Shown: positions 23,591-58,277 of the stretch, in pieces | Layout: every line of letters starts with the position of its first letter | How positions within the stretch are numbered: the first letter of the stretch is position 1 | Assembly (NCBI GenBank): GCA_051294905.1 | Contig: CM119374.1 | Coordinates: 20,584,001 to 20,648,000, forward strand | Length of the DNA stretch: 64,000 bases | Direction: 5' to 3' | From: Botryllus schlosseri | Lineage: Eukaryota | Made by a program: the position numbers and the translations under genes | The notes under the pieces: generated by a model | The model's database searches: none | Told to the model about the DNA's origin: nothing | Seen by the model: the letters and a program-made list of their open reading frames with translations, nothing else

Positions 23591-26500
23591 ATGAAGGAGC
23601 CTTGTTGGAAATACGCCATATTCTGCTTTCATCCCAAGTTCGACACGGGGACGTGGACTATAACAGCTGCTTTTTCCACAGTGGTGAGTTGGTGTTTTCA
23701 ACAGTGTTGCTATAATTGCTTTCCGCCCTTTGACATGCTTTGGATATGAATGCCTGTGACACCGTGTTCACTTGTAATACTTCACGCTATTGACCGTGAA
23801 TGTGTATCGCTTCAGTGTTGTCAGAGTCATAACTGTCATACGTATGAATGTATTTTATTTACCAGTCTAATCTTAGGCACAAAATAATAATAACAATAAC
23901 GATAAAAAGAGTCATTGATATGAAATATAGAGTTCGTGCCAAATGTATTCGTTGCATGACAAGATTGGATTTCTAATTTCGCTAGCTATAACTTCAATTC
24001 CGACAATAAGATGCGTATAGTGAAATGTAATTTCGATTTATCGAGACGTGGCTGTCGATTTTATGAATTATGACGCAGCAGCCGTACTCCGTCTCAAGGA
24101 TTTATGACGGGCCGTATGAGTAATCATCACCTGCGGGTAAAGTAATGTTGGTTTTAGTAATTTCTCATTCGACCTGTCTCCTTACTTTCGTAAATTATGA
24201 CACACCCCAAGAAGTTTACTTTGCCCACGGTTGATAGCGATATACATGTAGTCACAGCTCAATACCAATAGAGATTTAGGTCATCAGTTCAGTTGTATAG
24301 TTTCATGCAACGCGCACATTATGTTCGTATTTTCAAGAAACCCTTTGTACCATCATGATATCAACTCATCTAAACCATGTGTTGCCCATGGTGTCCTATC
24401 ACTAGCGCAGCCGAGCGCTATTGTCTTGGATTACAATGAACAGCATCCTGGGCAATTGTTTTGGTGTATGGTAACACTGCGATGCCGTTATGTCATGAAA
24501 TATCCGACATTTCTCTGATCACTTCGATTACAAAACGCGGTAACTATTACAAGTTTTGCGCAACTATATTATGTTACCATTACTGAAGAGTAGTTATGTA
24601 TGTCGGCGTTTTGTCTGTACCTGTGGATTGACGCGATTTGCGCCTTCTAATACAATGAATACAACGGAACAGCAATACATTCGATTATTCCAGACTTACA
24701 TTATGATTGTTCAATACTCACGCGCGTGATGACGTACCTCTACTCGTCCGGCGTCCGTGCAATTAGCACTCGAGTAAAACGTTGTTCCACTCGGCCACAT
24801 GACTTTGTGAATGTTGATTATCGTTACATACTTACATTTATATCACGGGAGGTCATATTAAGCTGAAGTGTGTTGTAATTCAATAGACCGTAGTTAACTT
24901 TCATGGAATAATTAAACGTTGTAATTTCTGAACGGAAAATACGTATCACGAGCGCATAATATGGGTCTTATTTCATTACGAAGGTATATTTTTGATTCCC
25001 ATGACCCGGTGTGTAGCATAGCAAGCATACCTGCAGAACACTTCGAAAAGCAGCCAAGCGACGCGCGTTTATAACTGTATAGTACACCTTCAATAAGTTA
25101 TATTCTGCGTTTGCAATACGTATCGGTTTTCGTGTGCGTTTCTGTAATCCTATCTGGCTATGTTAATCGCTTGATTTGTCGCGGCGTTCGGTTCATCAAC
25201 ATCATATTACTAACGAAATTCGTTGTATGTGAACGTAACATTATTGATGTGCTTGGGATTGGAGCTGGCCCGTTTAGTTTTCAGTGGACTTGTTATAAAT
25301 AGGAATAGTAATTCCAAATTATCTGAATGGGAGCTAGTGCTTGAAATACTCATTCAATCAAGTTTGTTCTTGGTTATGCTTTCACATAATCCGTTTCACT
25401 GCGCAAAGTACACCAGCTGGCAGCTATCGCAAGAAATTGCCTTCAATGTCTACTCGGTGATTACCTGATTATCGATATCATGACGCGTGACCGTATCATG
25501 TAAAACGCAGAGACCGAAGGTCATTAAGCGATACGGATTTGAGAAATGTTTGTAAACATTAACACCGCGTGGGAAATTAAATCACGGAGGGCGAGTCATG
25601 TCGCCTTGACTACGCGACTTAGCTCAGCTCTATTCGCCTCGCCGCGTCCGAGTCGGATTTAGGCCATCCAGCAATCAATGCCCAGCGGACTAATTTTTGT
25701 GATTCTAAATCAAGATGTATTTCTCAAATTCCGACGACTTGAGCGTGTTCAGTGAAGTTATTTTGTTACGAATTCCTGTAAGATTTGTTGTGAAATTCCA
25801 CAAGACATGTTTAACATATGAACAGTTCATTCGATTGGGGTCGCAAACTCGTATATTTGGACTATCAATCGTGTACGGAATCAATACCCTTTGCGCCGCC
25901 AATGAATGCAAATTTTTGTACTTGTTTACGACGTTTCGTTCTACACTTGCGCAATCAATTATGACGAAACATTAAACGCAATACATACGCTCCGATGGAT
26001 ATACTGGTAGATGAAAGTCATCTGCTGCCGCTAATATAGTACATCCTGTGAATGAAGCTGTTTATGTTATCATGCTGAATGAGCTGTACAGTGTACAATC
26101 GCTCGATGTAGAATGGCCCGAGGACAATTGATCCGTGAAATTAGCAGTCAACATGGCCCTGCTAAGATTTCGTGACTTACCAGCCTATTAATAACGTACA
26201 GAAATTTCCTGTTCGCATCCTAATTAATACTTGGTGTAAAAAGTCAAGGTCGTAAAGACGGTCCAGAACAGCTACAATCAAAATGATACATTTTAATTAT
26301 ATGGGCGGCGTGGAAATGATTTCCACTGTACTGTACTGTGCCGATGTCGTACATAGAATATTTTTGAACATCATTGATTTTGCGAGTGGTACTGGTCTTG
26401 TTACCATTGTCTATGTATCGTACCTCGGAATTCGCAGCATTTGTTTTATGGCGTTAGTCAAAATGTTCAAATATGCTATCCACATTCGAATACATCTCGA

Positions 26501-29500
26501 GATACTATGTTACATATTTACGCGATCCATATTCATTTACGACGTGGGCTAAGCGTTATTCGTCACTTGGCAACCTTATATTACTTTCAACGCTTCGCTT
26601 AACGGATTAATATCAAACCCTGCCCGTGTGTGTATTAGGGCGTTCACGATCGCTCGAAAAAGCTACTTATGTCAATAATCTTTGACAGCCGTCTCCCAAT
26701 TGCTGGTTACAATCGTTCATCATAACTTGCTATAACACTTAACACTGCTGTCGTACTGACTGCTATTATGCAATTTTTGTGAGAATTTATCTGGGTAAAC
26801 ACTTGACAATCTTGACTGCCGTGTATATATCAGACATGAGATGTTGATACACCGGGGCCTACGATAACTTAATTAAGTTAATTAATTAATTAATTTTGCT
26901 GATGTAAATAGTACATTCGAGATATATCAAACGACCAAACTTATTGATGCTACGAAAGTTTATAGAGATAGATATACTCCCAGACATCGAGGTTTTCAGA
27001 AATGTTAACTGCCAATATCACAAAAATGCATTCATTTTCGCCACATTTCGATGGAGTGTTTTGAAAACAAATTGAGTACAAAGGAAATGAGTTTTCGTAA
27101 AAACGCGGTCCTTCATTTAATATCGCTCACTTTGTACCACACAAATGGACTAACATCGACGAGATATTTGTATCGGACCGAAATTTGAATATCGACCGAT
27201 TCCCAATGTACATCAAATTGCTATTTTTGGCTTCATTTCCTAGGCAAGACTATAATTCTCGATATATTACATATTTCAGCATGGGCACCGAAGTTAACGG
27301 TTATATTATTCGGATTCGGTATTCCGGGAAACGAAATTGCAATTTTAATTTGACCATACATTTTATATTCACCAGATTTGGGTATGATGCAGATATAATA
27401 TTTGGCAGTATCAATCGCGATTTGGATTCGAATTCGAGCATATTTAATCCTCGCCAAAGTTCCATTTCGTAAGGTTTATATCATTCGTCACAAAGGTGGC
27501 GAGTGGCGACAGGTCGATTTAACTCCTGGACTGTATTTTGCAACCAGCCATGTAATCTATACTTGGATACCTGCCTGATACGCTACTTCCGGCCATCGTG
27601 ATCAGACTTTGGTGATACGTTGTGAAAATATATCTTCATCTCGACGGACAGGAAATCCGTACATTGAACTCAGTATGCAATGCCGCAAATTGCAATCGAA
27701 GATAGGTTTCGCTTATACGATGGTTGCCTGATCGTTATCATTTACTGTTATATTCCGCATCACGCATCTGGTTATACCAGCCACCAACCTAACGGTCAGC
27801 ATTCTGCATTTCCTTCTATTCGGTTAGGCTATTTGGTGGCGCAAATAGACTCGATGTTTTAAGTGGACAATGTTGGTTACGCGTTTCCATCCATGATTCT
27901 GTCTGAATCTGATCTGAAGCGGAGGAATATTATTTGCGATTATGTGAATCCTAATCCGTTCCGACCTGTCAAGAGCTGACCTCGCCAGCGACAGTTTAAC
28001 ACGCAAAACTGCCATTCGTCTATGATTAAATATGGCGAAATGCCAACCTTAATTTGGATCATTGAGCGGATATATGCCCAAGTTGGGTATTGTACTCGAG
28101 ACGTAGCACTGAAATCGAATAAAATCGTAATTTGAGTCCGCGAACATGTAGAATATAAATGCCCCGAAGTTGCTTGCCCTCTGTCGCTAGTTCGATTTTT
28201 ATCTTCAGATCAAGTATGCGTCGTATTTTCAAAATTAGATTTTAATAAACTTACTAATGCGGCCCGCTTAATGCACACTGCTCCGATAAATTATGCATGA
28301 GAATCGGTGCCGAGGAAAGAAATTCCAGACTGTACTTAAACATTCGGTTCTGAACGACATCCCATGCGCTCACCAAGTATTTTATATTTTATAGGAAGAC
28401 TTTAGTAGGACTGTATGGTCAGTAGTAAAGTGGAGGCTGCAGAATTTCAATGATGGACACATGCACGCCATTGCTACATTGTGACGTCACAACATTTTGA
28501 ATTCGAATTAAGGGGATGCTGTGCCTCTTTTCCAGTCCAGTTAAATCCGTGGAAAGTTGCATTTATTTTTGAAAAAAGTTGCAGAAGTTGCAATTTCACC
28601 ACGTTTTGCTCGGTTGACTAGCAAAAAAAAATTCAACTTCCCAGATTGACTAAAAAAAAAGGTCAATTTTCCGGCTCAGCTCCCGAAATACCCGTAAAAG
28701 CGTTACTTCGGTGCTGATTTACGGTGTTTCAGTCGAATTTGGTCGTGTATTTCTCCAAAATCGAAATTACTTTCATGAAAAATCGAAAAAGTTGCAAAAT
28801 GTTGCAAAAAGTTGCATGAAAAAAATGGTCAAAAGTTGCAAAAATTTGCACTATAAGATTCCTTCAAACAGCTTAAAACAGCATTCTACATATCTTACGA
28901 GTATTTAGGAAGCTGCCGGAAGCTGTAAAAAAAAGTTGCAAAAGTTGCGAAAACTTGCCCTACTTATTACTTATGCATAACGTACCACATACTAATGGCA
29001 TTTTGTCGTGTGTGTTCAAAGGTGTTATGCTTGATAAGGGTTGGATTCGTGTCCGACCGTCATTGACCGAACATTGAATTTGTTTGATCACCTATAGTGA
29101 AAAAGACGCGCTGTTCGTAATCCTGTTACATAAATATGCCTCCCTGTAAAAATCTGTCAGCACATACCGGCTGATATGAAACCTATTCTGCTTGAAAATA
29201 AAGCTTTATACTCCAACCCGCTTCCCAAAATAGTCTTGCTTTGATAAGGTTCAGAAAAGTATGTCATCGCTCGGTCAAATAAATGTTATTCCGAGCGGTT
29301 TTCGAAGCAATACGCACCGACTCAACTTGTTTATCTTTGTCATTGTGCGAGTATACAAGAGTTAGTGACCTGTTGTAGCTGTGTGGAACAGCTGAAAGGC
29401 TATCGTGGCGAAATAACTGGATTGTGAACTCGCAAAGATAACCCCAAATTCAGGCCACGTCATTGCTTACGACTGTAGGGAATCAACATGTTATTAGATA

Positions 29501-32500
29501 TGTCACGGACCACAGTAACCCATATTGGAATCAGTAACTCGTGGTAACTTTACTGTCGTTTCGATGACTCCGACAGTGATTTGTAATCGTATTTTAAACC
29601 TGAAATGTTGCACAATTCAAAATCAATCGGACTTGTTCGATTTGGTATCGCGTGATCTAACAGTAATACCGTACCTCTGGCGCAGATTACTTTGTCACTG
29701 ATAATTTCTTATCCAATCCACATTTTAATTAGACATATCCCCTATAGGCACGGTCATCATTGCTCCATCTCGCCACGGCTAGTTGTGTTTGAAAGCTTGT
29801 CAGATAGTTGTGCGAGTGTAAAACTAATCTTTCACCGCGACTATTCGTATTCTGGTGGTCTGCCGCAAGATGGTATCGGATAATATCGCCATATTAACAG
29901 CGATAGAAATCTACGAGATGGTTTTTGTTGGACCCCAATCTTCGCCATCTGCTACTAATGATACGTTGACTTTGATGTTCAATAGGGCCTCGTGAACCGG
30001 GGTTACTGACACTGAGATATTAACAAATAAAGAGACTCTTGGACGTGCAGAACCGCAGAATTGAATAATAACATTTAATCACGCCGGGCACTTTGATTTT
30101 GAGGTTGTTCTAACCTTTGTCACGTTGAGAAAAGTCTGGAGGTTACGTATATAGTCATATACACTAGACCACATCTATGTCCAAACTCCCGTCGACCTCC
30201 GCCCTATAGTTCAGCAAATTCCAACAAAGAACCGAATTCTTTTCAAAATTTGTGAATAGCTCAGGCTATAGTAAACATTGACAATCCCAACTATTATGAA
30301 TAGGTTCAACGCTCGATACAGCAATATGTGTTGTCAATGTCTGGACAGTACGAATTGATTACATTTTCGCTGAATCGAACCATCGGACAACAGTGATGGG
30401 AATTATTACATGTCACGTGATGAATCACGAGACTTTCCCGCTTGAGACAACTCATGCCGTGAGCGTAATAAACTGGACCGTGTGTTGCGTGTATCTGTGG
30501 AGTTTTCGCCGAAAAGTCCCGTTCGTACTCGATGGTTGTATCGCGGTGTGTTTGCCAGATATTTTTGTTCGAATCGCTTCGCTCTCGCGGAAAGATGCTA
30601 TCTCGATCTTTGTACATTTCGGAAACGCGGATCTTTTGTTCAACGATTAGACACTTCCTCGACAATATCCTATTTCTACGCCCTGCTGTGTTACAGATTT
30701 TTCTCGTGCGCTCACGTCTTGGATAGCGACATGGAATTGATGTTGGCCTTTTTCTTTGCAGATTATTTTCGGTGCTTTATTTTTCATCACGCTCGCCTTC
30801 TCGGCGCCAAAATGTTTTTGTCCGGAGATCTACGAACACATCGACGCACTTTCGCCAAGTAAGTTTTGGTGTGACGCCATCTGATTCTTGACAGATTGCT
30901 GACCCGTCTTTGTAAATATCGTGTTGGGCCCATCTTGGCATCGGCATTAGTTATACTGAGATTCACAGTGCCGCTCTCCTTATGGCTATTTACTATTTCT
31001 GCAGCATACATCTGCGATTTATCACCGTTCCATACCTTTTCTTTGTTTGCAGTGGGCTCTTGACTAGGGTTGGGCTCAATGATACGAGTACCCGTTACCC
31101 GAGCCAGTTACATTCTCTAGTACTGAATCTATACCGCTCTTGCGACTACCAAATATTTATCGATGATGATAATTATTATTGTTTTCATAATTCTTCCTCA
31201 TCACATACGAAATGATTCTTGATGTAGTTGATCTCATAATGTCTTGTTTGCGGTCGAGTGAAGGGTACATATTTTAGCTTTTTGGGCTATAGGCCGAAGC
31301 TATATATCTTGTCATGATGTACATTGTACAGTTACACAGTAGCATACACATGTATCTATATGCGGCATCAGCCCCGTTACCATTTCCGCAAAAATATCAA
31401 ACCATATCATTTGTCACATTATCGAAATTATAACGTTACAAACGTATCGAGGGATTCATCGATATCGCTGAGACATTTGCCCCTGTCGTATACCCAATGC
31501 TTGAAACTCACTGACACGTTGATCAACGATTGGGAACGCATATTTACGCATGAGATCATCACCTATACACACTTTCCATCCGCTGCAGGCTGAAAACTAT
31601 GTTTAGCCAACTTTTAATTGCCCCCTGGCCCCACGCATAGGGATTAGCCACGCGTTTCGGGGCGGTGTAAATCAATTTCTTTCGTGCGTTGTGCATGGGA
31701 TTAATAATGGGAAGAAATCACCCTTTTATTTTGCAAATGTGCAGTGTGCATTGTGCATTTGTGCAATGGATCGCTATTCAATGTTCGTAGTTCGCTAATT
31801 GCTATCGTAACTAGCCTTCTTTTCCTTTCGCAGCTTTCAAAGCGATATACGCCATCGCCGTGCTGGTACTCCTGGGCGTCGTCATAGTCTCAGTACTGTG
31901 TATGTACGGGACGTTTAAAGTAGGACATTTTCTTCTGATACTTTCAGCGCTTACTATGGTCTTGCGCTGTGCAGTCCATTATTGTTGAAACTACGTGTCG
32001 GAGAGACTAAATTTGTTAAAGATAATGCCATTACAAGTTAGCGACTTATTGATCTCGGGTAATACGGTTAGGCCTACATACGTAACACGGTTTTGGTCTC
32101 AAAGAGATTCGATTACGTCTAATTGCTCTGCGTTCGCGTGACTGCCGTGGCCAAACCCAGAGACACAAAATATTAACTGTTCATATTTCCTAGGGTTGCA
32201 TTTAAAACAAACGGTGTTTTAAAACACTTAGTTTTAAACATGTTTTAAACAGTGTTTTAAAATAGGCCTTTCAAAAAAAATTGTGTTTTTTTCAAGTTGT
32301 AAAATTATGCCATAATTGTGTAAATACTTTACAAAAAAACATGTTGTATGAGCCTACGGACGATCACCACCCGATGTAGCCGACGTATATCGATATGGGA
32401 TGGTTGGACTTGGAACCCTCAAAATAGTCCGTTCAAGTGCAATAGTACATATATTTAGTCAACGGAGTTATTTTTACCCTATATTTCAATTGTCAAAGCC

Positions 32501-35500
32501 AATTCACTATGACGTCACAATTCAATATTCGTGACGTCATGGCTTAAAATAAAACATAAAAAAACAATAAAAACATGTTTTAAATTACGGCCGTGTTTTA
32601 AACATGTTTGTTTTAAATTGATTTTTGTTTTAAATGCAACCCTAATCTCTCCCATTCAATTTCGATAACGTGACGTCACACGTAACGTCAGGTCATCGCG
32701 GAAAATGTTTTCGCCTCATCAAGTTCCATCGCAGATATTATGCTTCAATACTCTCCCGTTAGAATACCGTACGACTAACCACACTAGCGTAATGGTACGG
32801 ATACTATCAGTATCAGCAATTTGATTTTTTGCCTTTATTATTGTGTTTCTATTTTAGGCAAGGGCGTGGATGCTTTTGCCATACGTGATAACACTGGGAT
32901 TTGTGTCTGTGGCTACTTTTGCCGGTTCCATATTCATATTTATTCAACTGGCGTATATCGATCAGTACTTGCTATTCGATAACAGCACGTATTGGAATCT
33001 AGCGAAAATGGTAAGTCCAGCGTTCAGCATTACGCTTCTACATGAAACGGTGGTAGTGTTTCGCGTATATTAGCCCGGTATTTTCACTATGCGTGAATAT
33101 TGTTTTAGTGACGGATTTGCTTTCGTATCGAACTTTTCTGCTCTGGTGCGTGATGAGGTGATTCCTAATTAACAATCCTCAGTTACGAAATATGGATTTT
33201 GCGTTGATGACAGAAATACGCACTGCTTAATTAGCCTGGTTTCCGAATGTGACGTCATAATCTTCGGAACAGGAATTTGACAACTGATTGGTACACTGTC
33301 TCGTCTATCGCGCGCTTATACACGAAATTTTGATGTCTCGATATCCATATGGATTCATGCATTCAACGTCACGTGTAGTCGATATCACCTGTATCCGAAG
33401 TCAGCAAACTTGAATTCATGTGATCAGTCGTGTTTTCTAATTCGTCATATTGCTACCACACAGCACGAATTTGCGCGTGACTCCGAAACAGTGGTCGGAC
33501 CTATGATAGAGCCCTTGTTCGAAGACCCCCAAAATTCCGTAAGGCGTGTGTGCACCGGGTACTTTTGCAGCGACAATTGTGTGCCTCAATTATTACTCTT
33601 CCTCCGTACTTGTGGAGTCAATTGCTGTAAAACTTGAAGATGTTGGTAAACGGTTGATGTGATTCACGCTGTCTAGATTCCCAGCACTTACAATGCAAGG
33701 AACCAATCACAATGCCTGTGTGACACTGCTAGCAGTCATATCGCCGGGAATTAGGCGTAATGTTTAGAGCAAATTTAGTTCGATAATGATGTTCAGGCAG
33801 AAGTAGGCTTCATATTGGGACTTTGAATCCTCGTAATTATTGTATAGTATTCGAATAGCTAGCCCTAGCGATCGGGGAAATCAGATATCCGGGTTGGTTT
33901 GCATTTGTCAAAATCTGCTGTAGTCTCAGCTGGCGGTTACACGCATGGAGCCCTATGCACTACACTGTGAATTTCCTTCACCCTTCACGAGTGCCGAGTC
34001 GTTTTTGCTTTCTGTCACAGCCGTCGCTTCGCCTTCGAGAAGCTTCATTTTCTCTTAATTTTTGCATGTTGCTATTCCGACAGTTGAGCGAATTTGCGTA
34101 CCGCTCTGAACAAGCATTCGGACCTATCGTAGGACCGTTGTTCGAAGACCCGCCCAATTCCGTAAGAGACGTGTGAAGCCGGGTATTTTGTGGAAGCTAG
34201 CGGGGTGTTTTTGACTTGATCTCTGTCGACCTAATCGGAAACATCAGTAGAGACATAGGTCGCCGAACAGAAACGAAAAATCTGGCTTTGGAAGTCGCGC
34301 ACGCGCAAACACGAAGCGGACGACACTTTCGCGAATTTTGATGGTCTCTAGATTTAACCTGGTTTGGAAATGCCGGCCGGGCCGGTCCAACCTGGTTACA
34401 AAATCGTGGCGTATCATTCGAATACCAACCACAACCACTAACTAGTACGGTTAGAACGCCATTTTGAAGCGACTGGATTACTTCACAATACAAATCGCTG
34501 TGATTTAAAATAAATCTATCCGAATTCGATAATGCGAGCCGATCAGAACTTAATCTTATTCCAAAAAAAGACTACTGTTTATATTGAATCCCGAATCAAT
34601 ATCAATCAAACTTGGCAATAGTGGTAACTGCAGCATTTATGAAGAGAGCCGGGGAATCACCACGCTCCAGTGTCGCATTATGAAGTAAAAAGCAGATTGT
34701 GACGTCATATGAGTACAGTGACGTTGACAGCCAAAGTACAATGCAGATGGAATGTTTTTAAGCTGGACCAGTCATTTCAGCTAAAGAGAAAAATTTATTG
34801 CTTGGTCAACCAACATTAACAACAAATTGAACTGTAAAAATACCTAAAACCTATAACACACACAAAGAGTTTATAGACAATAATATTAATAATAGCAAGT
34901 AGAATCTGCGTTACAGTACCGACGGGTCCGGCGATACGATCCTTATGATCTTCACGACCAACCGGAATTCAGCAGATTATAAGTAAAGATATACACAATT
35001 CTCCGGGTAACTAGTGAATGACTTTACGCAACCTATCTCTTTATTTCAATAATACAACAGCCAATGGAGATTCCATGGAATTGACATCTACTCGCGAGTA
35101 AGTCGAGTAAGTCCTAGGTTTTCATGATGTGACGCAGAATCAAAACCTTTGATTTCGCTATACGCGGACTCGTCTATAGACGTTCCTGTAGTGTAGTATA
35201 TTTATTACACACAGTTGTCATGAGACAGACAAGGGCGTGGAAACCGCTCTCGTAAAAATCTGGTGTTCGAATCACTAACGTATTTGATAAAAGTTTGAAG
35301 TGCGTCCTTCTCGCTACTTGGGATTCCTGCTGCTCGCGACTAGGAGTTGAAATGACTGACCCTTCGAAAGATTGCCTTTGAAAGGCTTGAGCCAAACAAA
35401 ACATTTTGGATGACAGTCAGGTCGCCTGTCCTCTCTTCTGATTTCACCAGTCAATCAAACTCGGCTGGAAATATAGCCAATCTATTCAATAGTACATCGG

Positions 35501-38500
35501 GAATGTAGTTTATACGGCTTGGTTCGACACAGATCGCCAGCAAGTGTTGAAACAAAATTTAACACTCTTTCGATGCGAGTGGTGAATTTCACCGAGTTCG
35601 CTCGCCCCTGTCATACTATGTGCGCACAGTATGGTTTCATATGTCCTGGGCTCGTGGCACTTCAGCACGAATCGTGCGCGCTTTGGTTGCAGTGTGGTAA
35701 TTTACGATTATCCACAACCTCGGATTGGTCGTGTTTCGACATCCATAATATTAGTACAAAGCCGCGTACGTTCATGGAAATAACATTAAGGTGGTATCAA
35801 CTATCAACCCAGAGCATTGTCACATAAAGCAATTAAATACGCATGGTCTAAGTCGAAATAAGTCCAAATTATCTTCATATGGTATATTATCTTCATATGG
35901 TATAGAACTGCCATTATTTTGTTTGCGGTCGTATGAGAGGTACATGTTTGACCTTTTCGCACCATCTCTACTGCTTATTGCGTCATAGCGAGTGGTAGGC
36001 CACTAGATTTTGCACAGGCCTACTAGTAACTGCTAGTTCGTCATATTACCTTTGTTTGTTTTCGCCTGGGAGAAAAGTCCCTTTATGGGTCATCATAATC
36101 TTACGATGTTACGTGTAAGTTGATGACATAAACATCTGAGTTCGGTACTTTCTCGCCAGCGATTAGCAGCTCTTTTGGGAAAAACATATCCTATTCGTGC
36201 GTGGAAATTGCGCCAGTGCTCCAAAACCAGATTTTTATTTTACGAATAGCTAGTGGAACGGACTTGAATGTCGTCTCAAAGTACCGTAGCGGTTGAACCT
36301 AAATTTTAGCCCGCGTGTTGGTGCATCTCCGCGGTCGCTAGGTGACAATGGCCGCGTGTCTACAGCGTGAAAATACAAAATGGAACTGATTCGCATGACC
36401 GCTAAAATCGAGAACTAATCGGTTACTTGATCGAGTGTATGGAAATTTCAAACCCGATTAGACGTTGATTAGTCCCTTCTTACATGCTATTTGTTTGGTG
36501 ATGTTGCTATTGGGTGGCGTGGCGGTGCATTACTATTCCTATACGATGGTAGCCTACTAGAACTAATCTATCGTCAATACGCATTATCACAGTGATCGGT
36601 GTTGCGGTGTTAACGTATGCCTTGTTTTATTAATCGTTAACAGGTGACATAGAATAGAAATTAGTATGCATGAGCTCTTATCATAGTAGGCTATTTATTC
36701 ACCTGTAGTATTTTCGTTGTTAATTGTAGTTAGGTATTAGTATTCGTAGAGGGTGAAACAGAACTTTTGCTGTACAATGTGCATAGTTTGTATTTTCGTG
36801 CCATAGTTCGGTAATTATCGTGTTCACAAACCCACTAACGGTACCCCTACATGTCGCTTTACTGTAACATAAATTTCGTATCGCCGAATTTCGATGCCTC
36901 AGCAACTATTTACACCCTATCCTTCCTGATTACATTTGGCTATTTGTGTAACTACCGATATTGCTAACCTAAAACGCCGCAAAGAGATACCCGTTTTTCA
37001 GAAACGCTGCATAAGCCCAATTTATGCTCACCTGTGATGCATACCAGTATATTATCTGCTATTCTACCACTACGTAAAATTCGCGGTACCACTTCGTGTT
37101 CCTATTTATCAGGTATTGAAAGACGATCTGATAGCACAACTTGAAGGAATGTGGGCTTCTATCAACGTGCTTCTGAAACAGTTCTTGAGCATGGACATGG
37201 GAGACGAACTGAATCTTAACATGCTGCTGGATCGGGTACGTATCATATTTTATCGTAAGCGCGACACAGGCCAGTCGCTAGGAATAATAAATATACACCC
37301 GGGCGTAGTAGCTAAATAGCATGAGCACATTTAAAGTGCCACAGGTAAAGTTTGAACTCTCTGCGTGTGTTCGCTGTTCGTTGATCACGCTCAGTGTAAG
37401 TAGAAGTACTTGACGACGATATAGAAAACGACATGGTTCGAAAATATACGAGGGAGAAGGGTGGCGATTAGGTGCATGTGTAATGTGGGTAATCTTTTAG
37501 TTTAACAGAGTAGGGCGCACAGATTTTCTTTCTGGCACTGTTACTGCACATTGTACAAGACTACAAGGATGAGATTTTTTGCCCTCTCAATTAGTCTGTT
37601 TTTATTTCCTGGTCTGAAACTGTCTGTGATGGAAATTATGTCCGATAGTTTGGTGTCTAATTCGTATTATCAATCGTGACGTTTTCTAAGCCATAGGATA
37701 TAAGTTTTGCCCGTGTATATCTTGGAGCATCCTTCGAATTTTAGGCGCTTAAAGACGAAGTGATCATTTTGATGGGAGCCAGCAAGAGAGTCATGAAGAT
37801 GTCGGCGGTTTTTCTGCTGCTGGGATTGAATTGGCTTTTCGTAAGTGTCTATTGCAGCAGATTTTTGCACGCTGACTATATTCGCCTCGGTTACTTGCAG
37901 TAATGCAGTTAGGTTTGCTATGTAACCATATAGAATTTTACAATATGTAGTCAGTTGGGAAAAAAACACGTACAACGATAAACTGAAGTGATCTGATAAA
38001 CCACTGACACCGCACCGTCTTACTTTCACACCGAGAGTAGTTGTCTTCCCATTCACTCAGGACTCATCTAACGAATCAGGGTCTGCTTTGTTATTCACTG
38101 CAAGATGGCGCCAGATAGCGAACTTTATCTTGTCCGTATTCCCAGCAACGTAGCTGCCTAATCCAAATCAAATCGCAATTCGCCAGCACACGTAAGTGCT
38201 GTACTGAAAGTTTCAAGCTTTTCCACATTAGATTAGGATTAGAACTATAACTACCCAGTTTATTACAAATTAGATTAGAAGTACGGAGTTCACATAAATT
38301 TAGAAATTGAATTAAATTCCGAATTAGCAAGAAATACAATGATAACCATGTTAATTCCATGTCAAACGTGGCGACGTTTAACGTGCCCGATAGCCTGCGA
38401 TAGTATACGGCAAGTGCGTGGTCTACGGATAGCAGCTTTACAATATAACTAACTTGCAATAGCTGATACGAACGTCCTGAGTGAATCCTTGACTGACAGT

Positions 38501-47473: not shown

Positions 47474-50400
47474 ATGCAATACACGAGCTGTAGCAGACCG
47501 TCGGCTTTCGGCTGTGCCTACACAACGCTGGTGAGTTATTCATGCGAATTGCAATTCTCTGCTGTCCGCACATTTCTTCGTACGTTCATATATATATTTT
47601 CGTGCCAAGATATTACACAATTGCAGTGCGCACATTGGGTTTTTCACATGTTCCATCAATGAAGAAATATCCATTCGACATGGGTTTGATATTCGTATCG
47701 TTACCGTACTTTTCCATTACTGGTAGTAAGTGACATAGAAGCGAATATCCGAAGCAATTGATTTACATTACATCCTACATGTAGTACACAGTACACACTG
47801 CGTGAATAGTTGGTTTCTTGTCACCATTAACCAGGTTAATGATTTGATTTAGCTGAGACAAAGATGCTTTATGCGCGGACTCTTTGCTAACGAATGGATG
47901 ACCTCTCTTCCAATATAGTAATTTTTTTGCAGATGATATTTGGCTCGCTATTTCTGTTCTTCATCCCATTCGTGTTCCACCCTGGAATGTTTGTCGACAC
48001 AATCAACCTGCGGGGTGGTGAGTATACCGCTGTACTTGTAATGCGAATTACTATAGCCACATGAATTGGTAACCAACTTGGATATCGGTTTCGCGAGCAG
48101 CACGTATCACTGAACAATGAACATTTCATGTTTTTCAGTACGATTTCCTCATGAAAATACCGAAGCACACACATGTTAATAATTCGAGAATCGAAAATCC
48201 TTTAGTATATAGTGAGATAAAGGTAACTGAAATGTGGCGAAACACACGCTGTGTCCTGAAATAGATCTTTTGGTACTCGCAATACCATTTTAACGTGTTC
48301 GTCAGTTATTCTGGAAGAAGAAAAAAACGACATTTTGTGAGATTCAACTCACGGCAGCTTCCCATGAGCGACAAAAATTTGAAACCATGCTTCCGCAATC
48401 CGCATAGGCTACTATATAGGATTATCTTCAGCATTGATACATAATGTCGATAAAATGTATGTATCATCAGACTGAAACTGATTTATCTCATGTTGGAAAT
48501 TGCCAGAAACATCAAGACATACATTGAATTGAAGGCGATGGCAAAATTAATCAACTCCAGTCGCGTCCTGGAATCTTCCAATGGTTGTCTCTCCTCATAC
48601 ATAGGCACTAGGCCAGGAGTGGGCAAACTTTTGAGCCCGCGGGCCGCATACAACATCTGAATCCATTCGCGGGCCGCACTACGTAAAATTGGGATTATAA
48701 ACCAAAACGCAATATTGGTATTTGATTATATAGTGATGACATGGAGTTAATATATATGCTTATTTAAAACAAACCAAACATTGCTTCGATGATATCGTAC
48801 ACGTGTCAGAAACAGTGGCGAGATTTCATAGGCTGGTCGACCTCAATAACCAATTTTTCAAAACTCTAGAGATAAAAGTCGGTTGTCCCGATTCTTAGAA
48901 CAGGATTGAAATTTAAATTTGTGAGCATCGATCTGCTCATAGATTTACTAATCGCACTTATGGTTCAGTTCCAGGACACGCAATGCTGACAGCATCATAA
49001 CCATGTTAGCTTCAAGCACACTTCTACTATGTGTAGATAAAATACAAGTATCCAATTCTACGCATACAGAGAACGAATCTACCTAAGACGAGCGCGAATC
49101 GATTTTTATAAGCACATCACTGAGATAATTAAAACTGGAGTTGTAAATCTGATCCGAATAATGTCAATCTCGTTTAGGATTTCTTTGATGTTTAGCAGTT
49201 GAAACCTTTCAAACTGGGTGGGCCTTTAGATCGGGCTGTCGCTCCCGACATTAAACATAAAAAAATAATATAGGAAGTATTTACCTTAGAACAATGGTTC
49301 TCAAACTTTTGAAGACACGACCCCATCCCCCCTTATGATGGTGAAAGACTTCGCGTACCCCATATCGTCATATCACAAAACGTAACCAGGACGCTAGCAA
49401 ACCTAACGGGTATAGTTTCATGGCATGGAAGATTACCACTGTGGATGAGAGATTTTTAAATATGAAATTCCGACTCAATACAGAGGAGCAATTATGAATT
49501 ACATTTACACATAATGAAAATTTGTCCAGTAGAGTCGTGATGTTAATTCAATTCGTCCCCATCAACAAATTTTCAAATGACGTTTTCATTCAGTCCATGC
49601 CCCGGCGTACGAGAACAAGGATGTAAACAAGGAAGTGCGAAGACGCAATGATTGAAATTCGAATTGACGATCAAGTCATTACTAAACCATTAAAAACTTA
49701 TCATACTTTTTAGATTTACTGGTGGATGCCGAAACGCAGTACACGTCAATATGTATCGTATGCTTTGGATCGCTATTCCTCGCCATTCTCTCTGTCTTGT
49801 GCGTTACTGGAATACAGATGGTACGTTTGCAGTCATGTCCAGAGGCTAGATCTGCTATGAGTTCTAAATTTCCCGGTGTCAATTATTCGTTGACGAGAGC
49901 GATAAGGTGGATCCGTATGGAAGACATACTGTATTTTCGTTGCAGGACCGCGGTGGGTTGTTGGTTCCATATTTGATAGCCGAGAGTCTCCTCGCCTTAC
50001 TCGTCATCACTGCTTCATGCATCATCATCTTTTACATCAGCGCGATTGATTATTTGCTACGGAATATAGGCTTAGTACCTAATGCGGTTGGTATATTCAC
50101 TTCGATTACACTAGCAAGTATGCCGATTGCCGGCCGAAGGATTCAAACGCTCATTTTTCCAGGAAAGGATTGTGGTTATCAAAGCGGTTGTGGTCCTGAT
50201 GATATTGATGATCAACTGGATATTTGTGAGTATTTGTTTGTTTGGTATTCATGGTGTTGGCCCACTTCTACGCATTTTGTAAGACACCGTGGGCGTATGA
50301 GTCGAAAAAAAATTGAAGGGAAGGGGGTAATTTTTTACGAATTTAGCGGAATCCCCCATATCCATCGAGCCTTTAATTTCAACACCACCCTTTACACACG

Positions 50401-51784
50401 ATTCATAGACGCACACACACCCTTCCGTAGCGACCTAAATCCGGTATTAGACAATCGATTCACGAACAAGCCTCAAACCATTGAGAATCTGATTTGTAGT
50501 CGCGCGAACCGCGAACATTTTTTGTGATAAATAATTGAAATTATCAATAATGAAAGTACTTGTAAATGCATTGCAGATGATCACTGATCAAGTGGTGCCT
50601 TCGAAAGTTAAGGAACGTAATAATAAATCTTGAGCATATGAGCAATTTTCACGCCGCACGCGGTTAACAGGTTTCAGGAAGTTCTAGCAGGTTGACTTTG
50701 GCTGGGTCCATTATTATTTATTGCTTCCTTTAAGCACGTTCCTACTTAGTGACCTCTGGTACAGATTGTTGCTACTCTAAGGGTATTGGAATAGATCACA
50801 TGCACCAGACCAAACAAAGAAATACTTCATTGGTCAGACTCGTGCGATTTCAAATTCGCACTTATTCACGGGGACAATATTTTAATGTGCGAGTTGCATT
50901 CCTACCGCGGAGGTCTGATTGCAAGGACAGTACTATATTCGGCGTCAGCAATTGAAGGCTCCATCAAACACGCGGCGATTTTTATCGCCGTCAATCATTC
51001 TGGGAGCGCACTTCGTGGAGTCGCATTTCGAGGGTAAAGGCCGATACCTAATAGTCCCCGATTCGCATTCTACACACCACTACACTAAAGCATCCAACTG
51101 TCTCACGCAATGCTAGGAAGATCCCTTTCGCTCATGATTATAAAATTATGCGCATTTTTTTGAAAAAAATGAGTCGGGAGGGTTTACCATAATAAAACTA
51201 GAAAATACAGCTATCTAAATCACGAGACGAACAATTTTTGGTTGAATTCACCTGCCCAAAAATACTCTATATTGATTTACGAAAATTCACAAAAAATGTG
51301 GGGATGACCACTTTCGCCCCCTGGCTATGCCAATGCTGTCACTATGCACTGTTTAATGCGGATATCCCAATGAATACGCGTTTGTCAGTGGCGAGATAGC
51401 GCAGTGGCATAATCCGCGGCTGCAACACCAATGGTTTGCGGGTTCGAGTCCGACCGGGGGTCGACTTCAGAATTCCTATACCTAAGTGTTGCAGGTTTAT
51501 CTGGGCTCCTCCTCGCCAACTCATCGGCGTAAGCGGTGTCTTACAAAAAGCCTAGAAGCGGGCCGTACTATAAGTCGGCAGTTACGGAATTAAAATGAAT
51601 GATATCGGCCTGGTGTAAATGACCGTAGTAGTCGACAAACACCATGAATACCCCAAAACAAACAAACGTGTTCGTTGTTTTTCAGATCACGCCCGTAATC
51701 ATGGTGAGCATCCACTGCCACCATATTTTTTCGGGAACCGTCGGGCAAGGCAGACAGCACCAACTGCCTTTCAACAGCTACTGA
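47474..51784 (+). CDS. LAPTM4-like four-TM protein, paralogue B, 183 aa. Exons 47474-47530, 47933-48017, 49714-49820, 49946-50086, 50163-50225, 51686-51784
   Basis: Canonical splice sites, phases 0-1-0-0-0, 552 nt in frame. Exon-by-exon homology to paralogue C (CAYTTL|, IPFVFHPG, GSLFLAILSVLCVTGIQM|, GLLVPYLI, NWIF|, ITPVIMVSIHC). Confidence 0.82.
48614..48690. mobile_element. Terminus of a Charlie/Buster-type hAT element (paralogue B intron 2)
   Basis: CAGGAGTGGGCAAAC followed by two GCGGGCCGCA motifs. Related termini at ~58615, ~62670 and ~63211. Possible decayed transposase C-terminus on - strand around 48950-49200 (weak). Confidence 0.5.
51390..51667 (+). mobile_element. tRNA-derived SINE (paralogue B intron 5)
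   Basis: A box TAGCGCAGTGG (51397-51407), B box GGTTCGAGTCC (51441-51451), GGTTTATCTGGGCTCCTC core, CAAA-repeat tail. No tRNA acceptor stem. Confidence 0.75.
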
Positions 51785-52089
51785 ACTACAATATTCACTA
51801 AGAGTACTATGGGGTGAATTCGCTGTCGAGTCTGAAATCTCTTAATGAACAGTCTGCAGTATGTGTTTTGTGGTGAACAAGTTTACAATGCCTGATCTTT
51901 TAGGTTCGTTGGATGGTTATTTCGTTCCAGTAATCGATTCTTTTTTGGTGTCTTTATGTAACGCCTCAGAACGCGTACTTTTCATGGTGCTTTGAGTTAA
52001 CATGCGAGTGGTCGCAGGGCGTCTGGATTCGTAGTTTCTCTCAATTCTCTCTTGATTAAGTTGAGGTCACAGAAATCTGAAAAAAGTTA

Positions 52090-52330
52090 ATGGTGACGAT
52101 AAGCGCCTACCAATTCGGCGGAACTGGTTCGATTCCCGTCGGAGGTTTATCTGGGCTCCTCTTCCCCCGCCGTCGCCGTTCCTAGGGCGGCAAAAAAAGA
52201 CCCGAGAGAAGAATGAAAGCACTCACAAGGAATGGAAAGAGCTATTAGAAAGGGCCGCGGCGTCAAAAAGATCAACAACGAAAAGAATTGTGAAAAACTT
52301 GAAAAAAAAAAGACAACAGTGGGCGCCATG
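52090..52330 (+). mobile_element. tRNA-derived SINE, third copy
   Basis: B box GGTTCGATTCC (52126-52136), CGGAGGTTTATCTGGGCTCCTC core, GCGGCAAAAAAAGAC plus purine-rich body like the 15970 copy. Confidence 0.65.
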
Positions 52331-53825
52331 GAGATGTACGACAACTTGATTAAATTTTTAGTTCCGTTACAAATGCGATCTCTGGTGAGTGGTGATGTGC
52401 GTCGTGGGGAGCCAGTCGATTATAGACGAGCCGTATAGGGCCTACTTAACAATAACATCGAGATGTAAGATGTAACCCATGGTCGCTAACTATGTGTCAA
52501 ACGTTTTGGATTTTCATTAGCTCGCGGTACGTTAATTAATTGTAGGCCAGTCAGTAACTTTTGCGGAAGAATGCAGTATGGTTTTAAGATGCCTATATGT
52601 AAAGAGCTGATGTAGTAGTTCTCAACCGAGGTATCATTTGGAATGATCGAGGGGCACTTCGACAGCCCCTCCCCAAATGTTGGACTTGGGCTTCCAAGAA
52701 GGTGATCAATTGAGCTCCTGGGGAATTCGCCCTCAAACCCCCTTTTACGATTGGCGTGTATACCATAGCTAGAAGTCGGGTGTTTCTTTATATCAGAAGC
52801 CAGTGTGTATCTGCTGTCTAGTCGCGCCAGGCGCACAACTTTTTCCAGTCATGACTGAATTTTGCCAATAACATTGGTAATTGTAAATATAACTATTAAT
52901 ATTTGATCCAATCAGGTACGTGAACAGATTTACTGGTAGAGCTGAGGGAGGTGGTGTCTTTGAAAATTTAGGCCACCGAATTAATTACATACAACTTCTC
53001 CTGGGCCGTTGTTGCATGGATACTTTCTTTCGTATTAATTACTTTGTTGCATGTTGTCATTTGTGGCCGCTCGTCTGCTATATTAGAGTCAAAAGATAGG
53101 TTACGGCCAAAATGTCGTGGACATTTTCGGCCTACATTTCCTCGCGGCCGATAACCATATAAAAATCATAACATATCTGGCGACTACAAATCGCGCGAAG
53201 CTCGAAGAGCATTTTCAAGTTGAATAAGTTTCTCTAAAAATGCTTTGTATTTTATGTTGATTGACAGAAGAATTTTGGGCTTCCTTCTAGCTCACCCACC
53301 AATTAGGGGGTGGTCATGGCCGTGGGTGTTGCAAGGCTGCGTTTTAGTACTTCATGTAGCTTAAAACCGATAGCAGCTGGTTTTATGTATTTAGAACCCG
53401 GTGACGTTGCGGTTTCTGGTCAGAAAAGCGCGTCTGCGTTAACGCACGCAAAATTCGTCAAGAGGCACCCGAATACGGCGCATCACAAACCAGGTGTACC
53501 GTTGTGATACAATAGACAGCGCATTGTTTCGCTAATTTGCGATTATTCGAACACAAGGCGAGTTTGTAATACAGTGCGATATTGGAGGGGTACTGATGCC
53601 CTGACCAAGTCTTATAACTCGATACTAGAACGGCCGAAACAGGCATTTCATTGTAACTTCGAAGAATAGTAAAAGTTTACAACATTATTGGCGTTTGGCC
53701 TATCAGTCCAGGGCCATAAACTGTTAACAGTGAGGAAAATTGATATATTAGGAATGCGAGGCAATCGATATCAACCAAGCATAGTTGTAATAAAATGGGT
53801 TGAATTTTGAATATGACTTCACTAT

Positions 53826-54420
53826 CACTATGACTCGGAGTGTCGGACTTGACCCTCTGCATCTCGAATTGAAGTGAATTGAAAATGACTCGAGTCAAAC
53901 ACTAGGGCCTACGTAATTGAGATTGCGTCGGAACCTTGTGACTTGGTTAAAAACCAGCGATGAGCATCGGAGTGGATTTGGAGCGGAGTTTTGCCGATTT
54001 TGTGACAGTCGGAGTTTACTACAGATATTTTTTCGGAGAATTTCGGAGTATTGTGACTTAAGTCTCCGATATCTTTGGATAGCTCTGACCAAAATACACT
54101 ATTGATTATGATTACAAACCAAAACACAGACAGTTGACACCTTCGTAAATTCGTAATATGACGGGTAACATGCAAAAATGATTGCCAAGTGCATAAAAGT
54201 CAGCCATCTGCACTGCAACTGGGGACTGGAGAGTAAACAATACTATTAGGCCAACCATATTATCACATGTACCATGTTGTACCATGTACCATGCTTGCCA
54301 CTGTTTCGGATACTTGACGAGATTCATCTGAGTATCTCGGAGTCTGAGATTGAGCTCTTCGGAGTCGGAGGGAGTTTTCCTCAGACACTAAAGTTGTCGG
54401 AGGGATTCGGAGTCTCGAAA
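53826..54420. mobile_element. Degenerate element with CGGAGT(C) subterminal repeats, just upstream of paralogue C
   Basis: About ten CGGAGT motifs in two clusters (53830-54065 and 54335-54415). Ends not resolved. Confidence 0.45.
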
Positions 54421-54574
54421 AGCACTATCCGCTCATCACTGTTACAATCCCTCCCTATACACATCTAGCAATCCGTAATCAGCCGCATGATCACGACGTT
54501 TCGCCCGTTGATAGAATATTTAATCGATCGATCATATTGAATTAATTACTCTGACACCCTCGCCGGCAGTGAAG

Positions 54575-57500
54575 ATGCTGTGCTGCCCGAAGAGTTTCGA
54601 TAGCAGGTCGTGGGCTGTAGCTTGTGCCTACACAACACTGGTAAGTATGTCTCATAAATTTATATTCTGCTCTCCGTACATTCGTCGCTTGTTTTATATG
54701 CTACGAAACAACCACGCTAAATGCGTTGAACGTATCCCAACCGAGCTATATCTAGAAATATTGCATTGTGATATTGTTGCCCTTTGTTTTGAAAGAGTCT
54801 TCCTTGTTAGTTCGACATTCGTACCATCGCTATCACAGGAGCAGTGTGCTCTAAATATGAGGTGGTGTCAAATTAAAGTAGAATGCGTGAACAACTTTTT
54901 AGCAGCAGCCATTTTCTTCAGGAATCCATCGTATTCGAACTAAAGCTAGAATATTTTCACGATTTTACCATTCTGCTCTATCTGTGTGGTAGCGTCGTAT
55001 ATACCTTCTCAACCCTATATGAAAAATTTCAGAAACGCATTTACTTGCTTTTGCACTTTCCCAACGCGATCCATATAGGGATATATGGAATTTTAGACTG
55101 TTGTCAGACGGTATTATAAAAGCAGTGCGTTTCAATCTTGTTGAGTACCATCCGTATACTCATTTGTGGGCGAATATTTCATCCACACATACCAACTGAT
55201 AATAATCATACAAAACGAAAATGAAGGCTCTTAACACTTTTCTATTCAAACGTCCAGCAAGTAGGCTACCGGTTTATCAGTGACTCTGTTGCTGCTGAAT
55301 CTTTCTGGCAATTTCAAACCAGCTCACCGGGTTAGGTCAACGGTTGTCTCTTCAAGGAGACATCTCTTTTTCTCGCCTTTGATACCATCCAGTACATTAG
55401 AGTAGAGAAGTACTGAGTGTAATGGAGCTATTCCACGCCAGAAAAAGTTGAAAACATGCACAATTGTCATCCACACAAGTGTGTATCCTCCCACAGGTTC
55501 AAAAGCACTGTTATAAAAGAACTGCGTCCTAACACAAGGTTCTAATTACGGATTACGGTACGTAGGCGACCAGGCGTATGGTGCCTGCGCCTGGTTCGAT
55601 GAAAAAATAAAGACTCTCTCAACGGACGATAACTTTTAGCCAGGTATATAAGGCTAATTGTGTGTGAAGCAGACTCTCATTACGACTTGCAATATCGATG
55701 CATCACTATTACGAAACGTAATGAGCCTGTCAAGCATTACACTTCTCTAGGATACTGGTGTGCAAAATGAAATGTGCATCATCAACAGTGTTATAAGAAC
55801 AAAAGAATTAAAACATTATTATAACCTGTACAAAAAGATTTTGAATAATATTAATTGTAAATCAGTGTAACTCTTGCTTAAACCTTTCGGTGCCCAGTCC
55901 AGAAACGCGAGATGTCACCTAGGAAAGTATGGTATTCCGAAATATTTACTTGGGAATGGAGGATTCCTTTTTTCATATGTGCAATATTTGCAGCTGGTGT
56001 ATGGCACCGCCTTCCTGATATTTATCCCATTTGTGTTCCACCCTGGAGTGTTCAACTGCGTGCCCAACGAATCAAGTAGCCAACTGAGCCTCCGTGAGTA
56101 CTGATATTGAAGTTATAGCTATATGTCGCAAACTACTAATCTGTAGTACGAGAGTTCCCAACCTGTGGGCTTTGCGGATTTTTCAAGGCCGGCATGAAAA
56201 CTGTATCATCTTCAAGTGTACTCCACTAAAATAAAAGTATTACATTGAAATTCAATAAAAATACTAGTACAGCAATAAAGCTACGAATTGAACTTGGGTT
56301 TACTTTCTTTGTTTTACATTCGGATTTTTTATCGTTAATATTTTGAGATTTGCGCTATGGCTACCCTGATAAATAGGAAAAGGGAAATATAATATTAATA
56401 ATCCTAAGCTTGCATGGCTTTAACATATAGCTATTTATACAGTATACATGTACTGTACAATAGGGCTCTTCAAAAATGACTTTTTTTCTCAAATCGTACT
56501 GGCTACTTGATGAAATTGATAGGTTACCTAATTTAAGCCTACACACCAAATTTGGTTTAATTCCAGCCAGTAACCGCTTTGCTACACGAGATGAAAGTTT
56601 CTATTTATTATTAAAAATAAATAATAAAAAATACGAAAATTTTCTGTTCACCCCATGAAAGTGTTAGGCTGTCTGTATAAACTATGCTCACCAAATTTGG
56701 TTCAATTCCAACCAGTAGAAGCGGAGTTATTGCCGTCGAAAAATTTGGATTTTAATAAAATAGTATTTACGGTGACCGATTCTTTGTTTATTTATTATAG
56801 TTCTGCTCACCGTAAATACTATTTTATTCAACTCTAAATTTTTCGACTTCAGTAACTCCGCTTCCACTGGTTGGAATTGAACCAAACTTGGTGAGCATAG
56901 TTTCTATAGACAGCCTAACACTTTCATGGGTTGAACAGAAAATGTTCAAATTTTTTATTAGTTATTTTTATATAATAAATAGAAACTTTCATCTCGTGTA
57001 GCAAGCAGTTACTGGCTGGAATTGAACCAAATTTGGTGTGTAGGCTTAAATTAGGTAACCTATCAATTTCATCAAGTAGCCAGTACGATTTGAGAAAAAA
57101 AGTCATTTTTGAAGAGCCTGTACAATGTATGCTACATGAAAAAGGAGCGTGCAAGCCACATTGTGTTTTAGGTTCAACACTCTAGACCACCAGTTACTGT
57201 AAATGTAAAGCTACTATTTAATCAAAATAATGTTACCTAATTTTTTCAGTTTTAGTTTTCAGACAGTTTAGATATAATTTTTTCAGAGACGGTGCTATAT
57301 CACGCAATTCCGGTGTACGAGGCTACCTGTAGTCTTTGCATTGGATCATTCCTCGTCGCCCTTCTGTCTCTATTGTGCATTGTAGGGATACATAAGGTTC
57401 GGTTTTAGTAGAGGAAAAATCTCGCATGGGCTGGGCTTGTGGTAAATTCCTCTATTTTTTTAATCATAGGAAAGCAGCGGTTTTTTGACTCCGTATTTGA

Positions 57501-58277
57501 TATTAATGAGTATCTTAGCTCTTCTGTCTGTTGTCAAACCATATTTCGCTTTCAATAATCTCCGTCTTCTGGATGAATTTGCAATGAATGAAGATTCGGA
57601 GAATATGGGGCCATATACGGTTGGTAGTCACTTTGATTTCGAGCGGATCTGCAGTGAAAGGATTGTAGCGTGGTCATTTTCAGGAAATGAATGAAGTTAT
57701 CAATTCGATGAGAGTTTTAATGACGCTGCTGTCGTACTGGGTATTTGTAAGTATTATTTTCATCATCATTGAGGTTATTCAACTATATGCTTCAAGTCTT
57801 GATCTGAATGTTATTTTACTATGTTATATCGTGTCGGTGTCATATTCCAACGAATAGTGAGTGTTAGCTATTCTTGAAGTAGGCCTATATCAGTCATTAT
57901 TCGGACGACAAAAGCTTTTGCTCCTTGGTTCGCATCTATAATATTGACTGCATTGGAATACTGACGTCATAGCCAATTTAGAATTAAGAATCACACGCAT
58001 TGGATTTTCATGATGTAATTACAGACTCTCTCGGATGCAAACCGCAGTCGGTACTAGGTATAGTTACTTCCTTAGTGTTTTCAACGAATTTTCAGGTTTA
58101 GTTTACCAATGGATTTTCTATCTGCAGATTACACCCATCGCCGTGGTGGGCAGACACTGCAACCGACTGATGACACGCAACGCTAGCGGATATGCCAGAG
58201 TGCCTTTTATAGAGGGGCCGCCCACTCAAGAATCTCAGCCACGCGGATTTTCTGTGGCCTCGGCTGGCGGGGTTTGA
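54575..58277 (+). CDS. LAPTM4-like four-TM protein, paralogue C, 212 aa. Exons 54575-54640, 55994-56093, 57287-57396, 57470-57619, 57684-57746, 58128-58277
   Basis: Canonical splice sites, phases 0-1-0-0-0, 639 nt in frame. Four hydrophobic segments; GIHK|ESSGFLTPYL matches the LAPTM GAYK|QRAAWIIPF junction; tail has GYARV (GYxxPhi). AATAAA at 58563. Confidence 0.85.
56458..57120. mobile_element. Foldback / long-TIR MITE (Tc1/mariner-like, TA flanks) in paralogue C intron 2
   Basis: Arms 56458-56775 and 56807-57120 are near-perfect reverse complements around a 31-nt spacer; the ORF track gives almost the same peptide on + (56476) and - (inside 56924..57154). Confidence 0.9.

Follow-up and report, generated by a model that had tools for sequence, protein, structure and literature searches.

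A tandem array of three four-pass membrane-protein genes in Botryllus schlosseri, from a tunicate family with probable LAPTM/pasiflora affinity

We analyzed a 64,000-nucleotide stretch of the genome of the stolidobranch ascidian Botryllus schlosseri (assembly GCA_051294905.1, contig CM119374.1, positions 20,584,001 to 20,648,000 of the forward strand), referred to as the window, with positions counted from its first nucleotide. It contains a tandem array of three paralogs of one four-pass membrane-protein family, all on the + strand: gene A (23591-39244), gene B (47474-51784), and gene C (54575-58277). The array opens with the ATG of A at 23591 and closes with the final base of the C stop codon at 58277; the window is AT-rich animal DNA of about 40% G+C, and long open reading frames (ORFs) are absent from the region 23591-58277. 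The three genes have six core exons in common, with intron phases 0-1-0-0-0 and GT-AG boundaries at all introns, and each product contains four hydrophobic segments (transmembrane segments TM1 to TM4). An earlier note on this DNA had proposed three same-strand, multi-exon, four-TM genes with homologous junctions, and spliced models, tblastx comparisons, and profile searches all bear this out. The strong divergence that it described for B and C is equally evident, as the two proteins share 40% identity with each other and 27% with A.

Our best explanation, to which we assign as a whole a probability of about 0.6, is that the array consists of three expressed paralogs and belongs to a family that Pfam does not classify and that is known so far from tunicates only. 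The family would lie in the tetraspanin-like four-TM clan CL0347, with the LAPTM/pasiflora branch (Mtp and DUF4728) nearest, and as part of the same explanation B and C are probably trimmed, fast-evolving duplicates without the extra loop exon and long tail of A.

Structure of the three genes

A motif search for landmark peptides located genes B and C, with matches at 47.5, 51.7, 54.6, and 58.1 kb of the + strand. A tblastx comparison of 47.0-52.2 kb with 54.0-58.6 kb returned six co-linear, exon-sized matches (group expectation value [E] of 6e-22), and the intervening DNA could not be aligned. Both genes have six exons with open frames and intact splice sites throughout, encoding 183 residues in B and 212 in C, and both have a weak, unusual donor, GTTGGT, after exon 4. 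In B, exon 1 (47474-47530) runs from the ATG to AYTTL and a GTGAGT donor, exon 2 (47933-48017) encodes TM1 and loop 1 and ends in phase 1, exon 3 (49714-49820) encodes TM2 and ends in GIQM, exon 4 (49946-50086) carries LVPY and TM3 ahead of the weak donor, exon 5 (50163-50225) encodes the first half of TM4 and ends in NWIF, and exon 6 (51686-51784, stop included) carries ITPVIMVSIHC and a short tail. In C, exon 1 (54575-54640) likewise runs from the ATG to AYTTL, exon 2 (55994-56093) encodes TM1 and a loop 1 with an NES sequon and ends in phase 1, exon 3 (57287-57396) encodes TM2 and ends in GIHK at a GTTCGG donor, exon 4 (57470-57619) carries LTPY, TM3, and loop 2, exon 5 (57684-57746) encodes the first half of TM4 and ends in YWVF, and exon 6 (58128-58277, stop included) carries ITPIAVVGRHC and a tail with GYARV. 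The junction peptides listed for B and C in the earlier note (AYTTL, GIxK, LxPY, W(I/V)F, and ITPxxxVxxHC) were thus found as given, the second of them reading GIQM in B and GIHK in C. Neither gene has the extra loop exon, the small-loop CxC, or the long tail of A.

Gene A consists of seven constitutive exons and two optional cassettes, with a product of 320 residues. Its core exons were located with a profile of B and C, after which the flanks were read, and its extra exon was located by mapping relatives onto the window. The profile matched exon 4 of A at E 0.011, and the remaining exons were among its weak matches in the correct order. Exon 1 (23591-23683) supplies the ATG, the N-terminal motif FCFHPKFDTGTW, and the start of TM1, ends at a GTGAGT donor in phase 0, and is 94% identical to the N termini of two related proteins, P0009 and the Styela isoform P0008. 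Exon 2 (30762-30858) encodes TM1 and loop 1 with a conserved PKCxC and ends in phase 1, exon 3 (31834-31919; phase 0) encodes TM2 and ends in YGTFK, and exon 4 (32858-33010; phase 0) encodes LLPY, TM3, and the beginning of the large loop with an NST sequon. An extra constitutive exon (37113-37235; AG..GTACGT, phase 0/0) adds 41 residues forming a helical part of the large loop; it is present in all A orthologs and has no counterpart in B or C. The next exon (37745-37840; phase 0), which is the homolog of exon 5 in B and C, encodes the first half of TM4 and ends in NWLF, and the last exon (38930-39244, stop included) completes TM4 and adds a Ser-rich tail of about 90 residues with SDDYSGLSLRELKRMKS and the C-terminal KFPR..FL.

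The two optional cassettes lie between exon 4 and the extra loop exon. Cassette a (33464-33538; AG..GTAAGG, phase 0/0) encodes 25 residues and matches the 25-residue insert of Styela isoform X1 (P0008), and cassette b (34084-34161; AG..GTAAGA, phase 0/0) encodes 26 residues and is a tandem copy of cassette a, the two forming a 102-nt repeat with 72% DNA identity. Where the window has two cassettes, Styela clava has one (L001, 19823-19897), which is used in its isoform X1. The claim that A carries extra phase-0 exons therefore held, with one constitutive exon and two cassettes. The last exon of A also contains a consensus donor, AAG ATG/GTGAGT (38981-38989). Because every ortholog reads through it in frame, a short isoform of A is at best minor.

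Pfam searches with ten long ORFs between and inside the genes, on both strands, gave no match, so there is no sign of further coding genes or transposon proteins among them.

Gene A is conserved across ascidians

A search of an exon-4 profile against a library of 1.84 billion proteins returned three hits (P0001, P0002, and P0003), of which the sole full-length protein is P0003, the 312-residue Ciona intestinalis LOC100180589. Related to P0003 are unnamed proteins from Ciona savignyi, Clavelina lepadiformis (LOC143450829), and Styela clava (LOC120327744, two isoforms) together with several transcript-derived proteins. Full-length identity to A is 81% for P0009, 75% for P0006, 72% for P0007 (the Styela clava LOC120327744 protein), and 46% for the Ciona protein P0003, and A matches the profile of the A family at E 1.6e-158. 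P0009 is an unbroken 320-residue ORF on a 1,415-nt transcript contig (L002) of a related species, and the Styela clava ortholog has the same exon layout as A, including one cassette exon. On the basis of full-length collinear similarity, motifs, and exon layout, we identify A as the ortholog of an unnamed, uncharacterized gene conserved across ascidians. A literature search on the Ciona and Styela locus names of these orthologs found nothing.

Comparison of A with L002 gave a proportion of nonsynonymous differences (pN) of 0.108 against a synonymous proportion (pS) of 0.82, the latter being saturated. As judged from these coding differences, A is slowly evolving and under strong purifying selection. 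The view of the array as a lineage-specific family was therefore right for B and C, within the searches made, but not for A.

The other two hits of the exon-4 search are prokaryote-style ORF calls on ascidian contigs in a public protein collection, in which an exon runs into an intron. P0001 is a call on A exon 4 of a relative that continues into the intron, and P0002 is a B-like ORF from another species in which exons 4 and 5 of B are read through the intron between them. Both look protein-like but are not gene products.

Divergence of B and C

In a search space of 20,000 proteins, the A-family profile matched C at E 2.7e-10 and B at E 3e-5, which makes both genes paralogs of A that stand outside the A ortholog group. 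Between B and C, the rate of nonsynonymous substitution (dN) is 0.55 and the synonymous rate (dS) is 1.09. P0002 matches 24 of the first 29 residues of B exon 4, over TM3, and 16 of the 21 residues of exon 5, over TM4. Word-indexed protein searches, one with the ORF that contains B exon 4 and another with the B-like fragment P0002, recovered no annotated relative of B or C, and B/C-like exons were not found within 10 kb downstream of the A ortholog in Styela clava.

The RNA contigs and reads aligned to gene C are 95-99% identical to the window. Across the exons between 56035 and 58184, seven codons of C differ between window and RNA with a change of amino acid (G40E, Q56H, E67G, T69M, M131T, N132A, and V162I, the last through a G>A difference at 57741) and three differ silently, in a small sample that may mix individuals. 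These codon differences suggest that the protein is highly polymorphic or that the RNA comes from a second allele or strain.

Transcription and splicing

Contigs and reads from RNA runs of the same species were aligned over 53800-58800 (runs X1, X2, and X11). All five junctions of C are present in run X2 contigs, each as a GT..AG joint (54640/55994, 56093/57287, 57396/57470, 57619/57684, and 57746/58128), and the last two of these occur in run X1 as well. At the 56093/57287 joint, the contig reads AT where the window reads AG. Nine raw reads from the 2026 bulk RNA sequencing run X11 also stop at 58128, and their loose ends spell the end of C exon 5. The RNA check of the junctions called for in the earlier note thus supported C at every junction, and C is a real, spliced gene. 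Some contigs run unspliced into the introns of C, so pre-mRNA or DNA is also present, and exon depth is low. RNA-run contigs contained about 12% of the words sampled from the C region and up to 13% of those from the B region, which is approximately the exon share.

Repeats in and around gene C are conspicuous in the same RNA data. Intron 2 of C contains a large foldback element (56464-57118) in which complementarity is 98% between the outer arms (56464-56579 and 57003-57118) and 91% between the inner arms (56612-56775 and 56807-56970), with the same peptide-like ORFs on both strands. Multiple copies of this element exist, and RNA-run contigs contain it in great abundance, at a summed word depth in the thousands. 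The segments 53967-54467 and 58476-58800, which flank C, have summed RNA contig depths of hundreds to thousands, and many of the reads extend into sequence of a different kind. Both segments are probably dispersed repeats whose transcripts come from other places in the genome.

Family placement

We compared 10 A-family proteins (E limit of 10) and individual exons of the three genes with Pfam. The Tetraspanin family (PF00335) matched 7 of the 10 proteins over TM1-TM3, at best with E 0.0045 and 17.1 bits against a cut-off of 32.1, and DUF4728 (PF15860) matched two over TM2-TM3, with E 0.053 and 14.6 bits against a cut-off of 26.7; DUF7027 was a further match below threshold. Pfam clan CL0347 comprises Tetraspanin, Mtp, and CD20 (PMC13539156). 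DUF4728 is tied to this clan through Mtp only, in that both domains occur in the insect pasiflora/Ikebana family, for which a link to LAPTM4A/B has been described (bioRxiv 10.1101/2024.04.13.589362). Protein language-model searches with two A orthologs that are 42% identical to each other had as neighbors the LAPTM4B/LAPTM5 (Mtp) clusters, nematode "putative LAPTM" proteins (DUF7807/DUF7027), and DUF4728 clusters, with scores of 0.88-0.89 and 182-194 shared features. When these Mtp/DUF neighbor families were omitted, tetraspanin clusters appeared first at rank 38 (score of 0.75 and 131 shared features). All of these weak signals point to one clan, and we provisionally place the family in CL0347, with the LAPTM/pasiflora branch as its probable nearest neighbor.

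A number of results weigh against this explanation. Mtp (PF03821) matched none of the 10 A-family proteins at an E limit of 10, no Pfam family reached its cut-off in any of them, and individual exons of the three genes yielded only chance-level matches to unrelated short TM families. The A-family profile matched no sequence of a solved structure at E values up to 10. The language-model tool itself states that a score below 0.9 is no more than a lead. Two AlphaFold2 models, one of the full length and one of the TM core, were poor (predicted local distance difference test values of 53 and 59), and Foldseek searches with them (Swiss-Prot models, AFDB clusters, and PDB) and two ESM-Atlas searches gave no LAPTM match and only weak matches to MS4A and CD81 (template modeling [TM] scores of 0.3-0.48); given the quality of the models, we treat the fold searches as uninformative. 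For the array itself, the splicing of B is predicted from its homology with C and from its share of RNA words.

The description of the three proteins as LAPTM4-like in the earlier note consequently survives in part. An affinity of LAPTM type is the best lead, through the language-model neighbors, but membership in LAPTM4 was not supported, with both the Mtp match and the PY motifs missing, and the suggested Pfam comparison left DUF4728 as well short of its cut-off (14.6 against 26.7 bits). A match to LAPTM4 gene structure had also been offered as an argument. In tetraspanin genes, the ancestral introns are in phase 0 and the small loop has derived introns of phase 1 or 2 (PMC2650405), an arrangement that fits the same phases, so the phase pattern does not discriminate between the candidate families.

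Alternative explanations

It is unlikely, in our estimate, that the family is an aberrant branch of tetraspanins that lost the CCG motif and the other large-loop cysteines and acts in surface tetraspanin-type microdomains. Tetraspanin is the commonest and best of the weak Pfam matches, and the UniProt automatic name of the Ciona savignyi ortholog P0004 (H2ZHQ7) is "Tetraspanin"; this protein has no Pfam match at threshold. In the low-confidence models, the large loop of A forms a helical section of about 75 residues between extended TM3 and TM4 helices. Of the top PDB matches, CD81 alone is a membrane protein with four passes, and it recurs among the Swiss-Prot matches. The mostly phase-0 introns with one phase-1 intron in the small loop would suit a tetraspanin gene (PMC2650405). 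However, the best Pfam match reaches 17 bits where 32 are required, every fold match has a TM score below 0.5 and comes from a poor model, the A-family profile finds no solved tetraspanin at E values up to 10, and tetraspanins rank far behind Mtp and DUF4728 by language-model features. The TM3-TM4 loop is devoid of cysteine in every A-family member and in both B and C, so that classical tetraspanins can be ruled out. That the three genes are true LAPTM4 orthologs or co-orthologs, endolysosomal LAPTMs that diverged beyond recognition in tunicates, is more doubtful still. The top language-model clusters are LAPTM4B and LAPTM5, and the four TM helices, the similar size, and the short Cys/His-rich N-terminal motifs agree with it. 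Against this stand the failure of Mtp to match any of the 10 proteins, the absence of the PY motifs that bind Nedd4-type ligases and help sorting in LAPTM4/5 (PMC3214061), and the large helical loop and 90-residue Ser-rich tail of A, which are unlike LAPTMs; the large loop of LAPTM5 has been described as shorter than that of tetraspanins (PMC13539156).

For B and C, two further readings concern the rapid change of their proteins. They could be young, lineage-restricted, highly polymorphic genes under diversifying selection that encode surface or endosomal recognition or immune-type receptors of the ascidian; the sole hints of this are the B/C dN/dS of about 0.5 and the seven changing against three silent codons between C alleles, and we hold it to be improbable. 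The same two observations, along with the low depth of C in the runs aligned and the lack of an annotated B/C relative in our searches, would also be expected if B, C, or both were decaying duplicates, that is, transcribed pseudogenes in the making without protein function. We regard such decay as very improbable, since the frames of B and C are open over six exons with all splice sites intact, C is correctly spliced, and the four-helix hydrophobic pattern is retained in both. In addition, the similarity of B and C is confined to exons, with introns that cannot be aligned at a dS of about 1.1, and a B ortholog in another species keeps TM3 (24/29) and TM4 (16/21).

Protein features and proposed function

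Gene A encodes the N-terminal motif FCFHPKFDTGTW, a CxC in the small loop, and a cysteine-free, helical large loop of about 75 residues. An NxT sequon in the large loop is present in 7 of 10 orthologs, whereas P0010, P0011, and P0013 have NDA at this site. Because basic residues lie next to the N terminus, the TM2-TM3 turn, and the beginning of the tail, and because the sequons of A and C fall in loops, both termini are predicted to be cytosolic (N-in, C-in).

No PPxY or LPxY motif occurs anywhere in A, B, or C, as had been stated for their tails. The YxxPhi-type signals described earlier are present as YARV in C and YSGL in A, but the tyrosine of YSGL is not conserved, as the site reads CSGT in Ciona and Clavelina and WSGM in P0010. 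The proposed endolysosomal location is unsupported. A orthologs do retain another motif in the tail, SDDxSG with a basic KRM(K/R)S after it.

By analogy with LAPTMs, pasifloras, and tetraspanins, the proteins of the array may lack enzymatic activity and serve, with both termini cytosolic, as membrane adaptors or scaffolds. In this role they would associate with other membrane proteins inside the bilayer and control the trafficking or stability of these partners. Sorting of A might then proceed through its phosphorylatable, acidic, Ser-rich tail instead of through a PY/NEDD4 route, with the tail as the likely regulatory handle, and the short-tailed B and C may modulate or compete.

Significance and comparison with known systems

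The array adds to the tetraspanin/LAPTM/CD20 clan a probable family that Pfam does not recognize and that has so far been seen in tunicates only. Conservation of A in all of the sampled ascidians leads us to expect a basic role in cell biology, which could be tested in Ciona. A is already annotated, although uncharacterized, whereas B and C appear to be unannotated and to have no entry in public protein sets. In ascidian genomes, it is easy to overlook a short membrane gene of several exons whose donors are weak, as GTTGGT and GTTCGG are. The locus offers a compact case of duplication that was probably followed by loss of a loop exon and tail and by rapid divergence. It settles no long-standing question, and function is something that we infer.

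Set beside known four-pass proteins, the family resembles tetraspanins in its weak match over TM1-TM3, in the large helical second loop of A, and in its mostly phase-0 introns, and differs from them in the absence of the CCG motif and of all large-loop cysteines and in its distance by language-model features. With LAPTM4A, LAPTM4B, and LAPTM5, which are among its nearest language-model neighbors, it shares small size, four passes, and a short Cys/His-containing N terminus. The TM2-TM3 turn of LAPTMs is short and of the YG...LxP(Y/F) type, like the turn in A, B, and C. However, the L/PPxY motifs and an Mtp match are absent here, and A has a far longer helical TM3-TM4 loop as well as its Ser-rich tail of about 90 residues. 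Pasiflora proteins act at cell junctions. The pasiflora/Fire exit/Ikebana proteins (DUF4728, DUF7027), which are four-pass relatives of LAPTMs (bioRxiv 10.1101/2024.04.13.589362), are likewise high-ranking language-model neighbors, but the DUF4728 match of the A family remains below its cut-off. The Ciona, Styela clava, and Clavelina orthologs, each a single annotated gene, have the same length and motifs as A.

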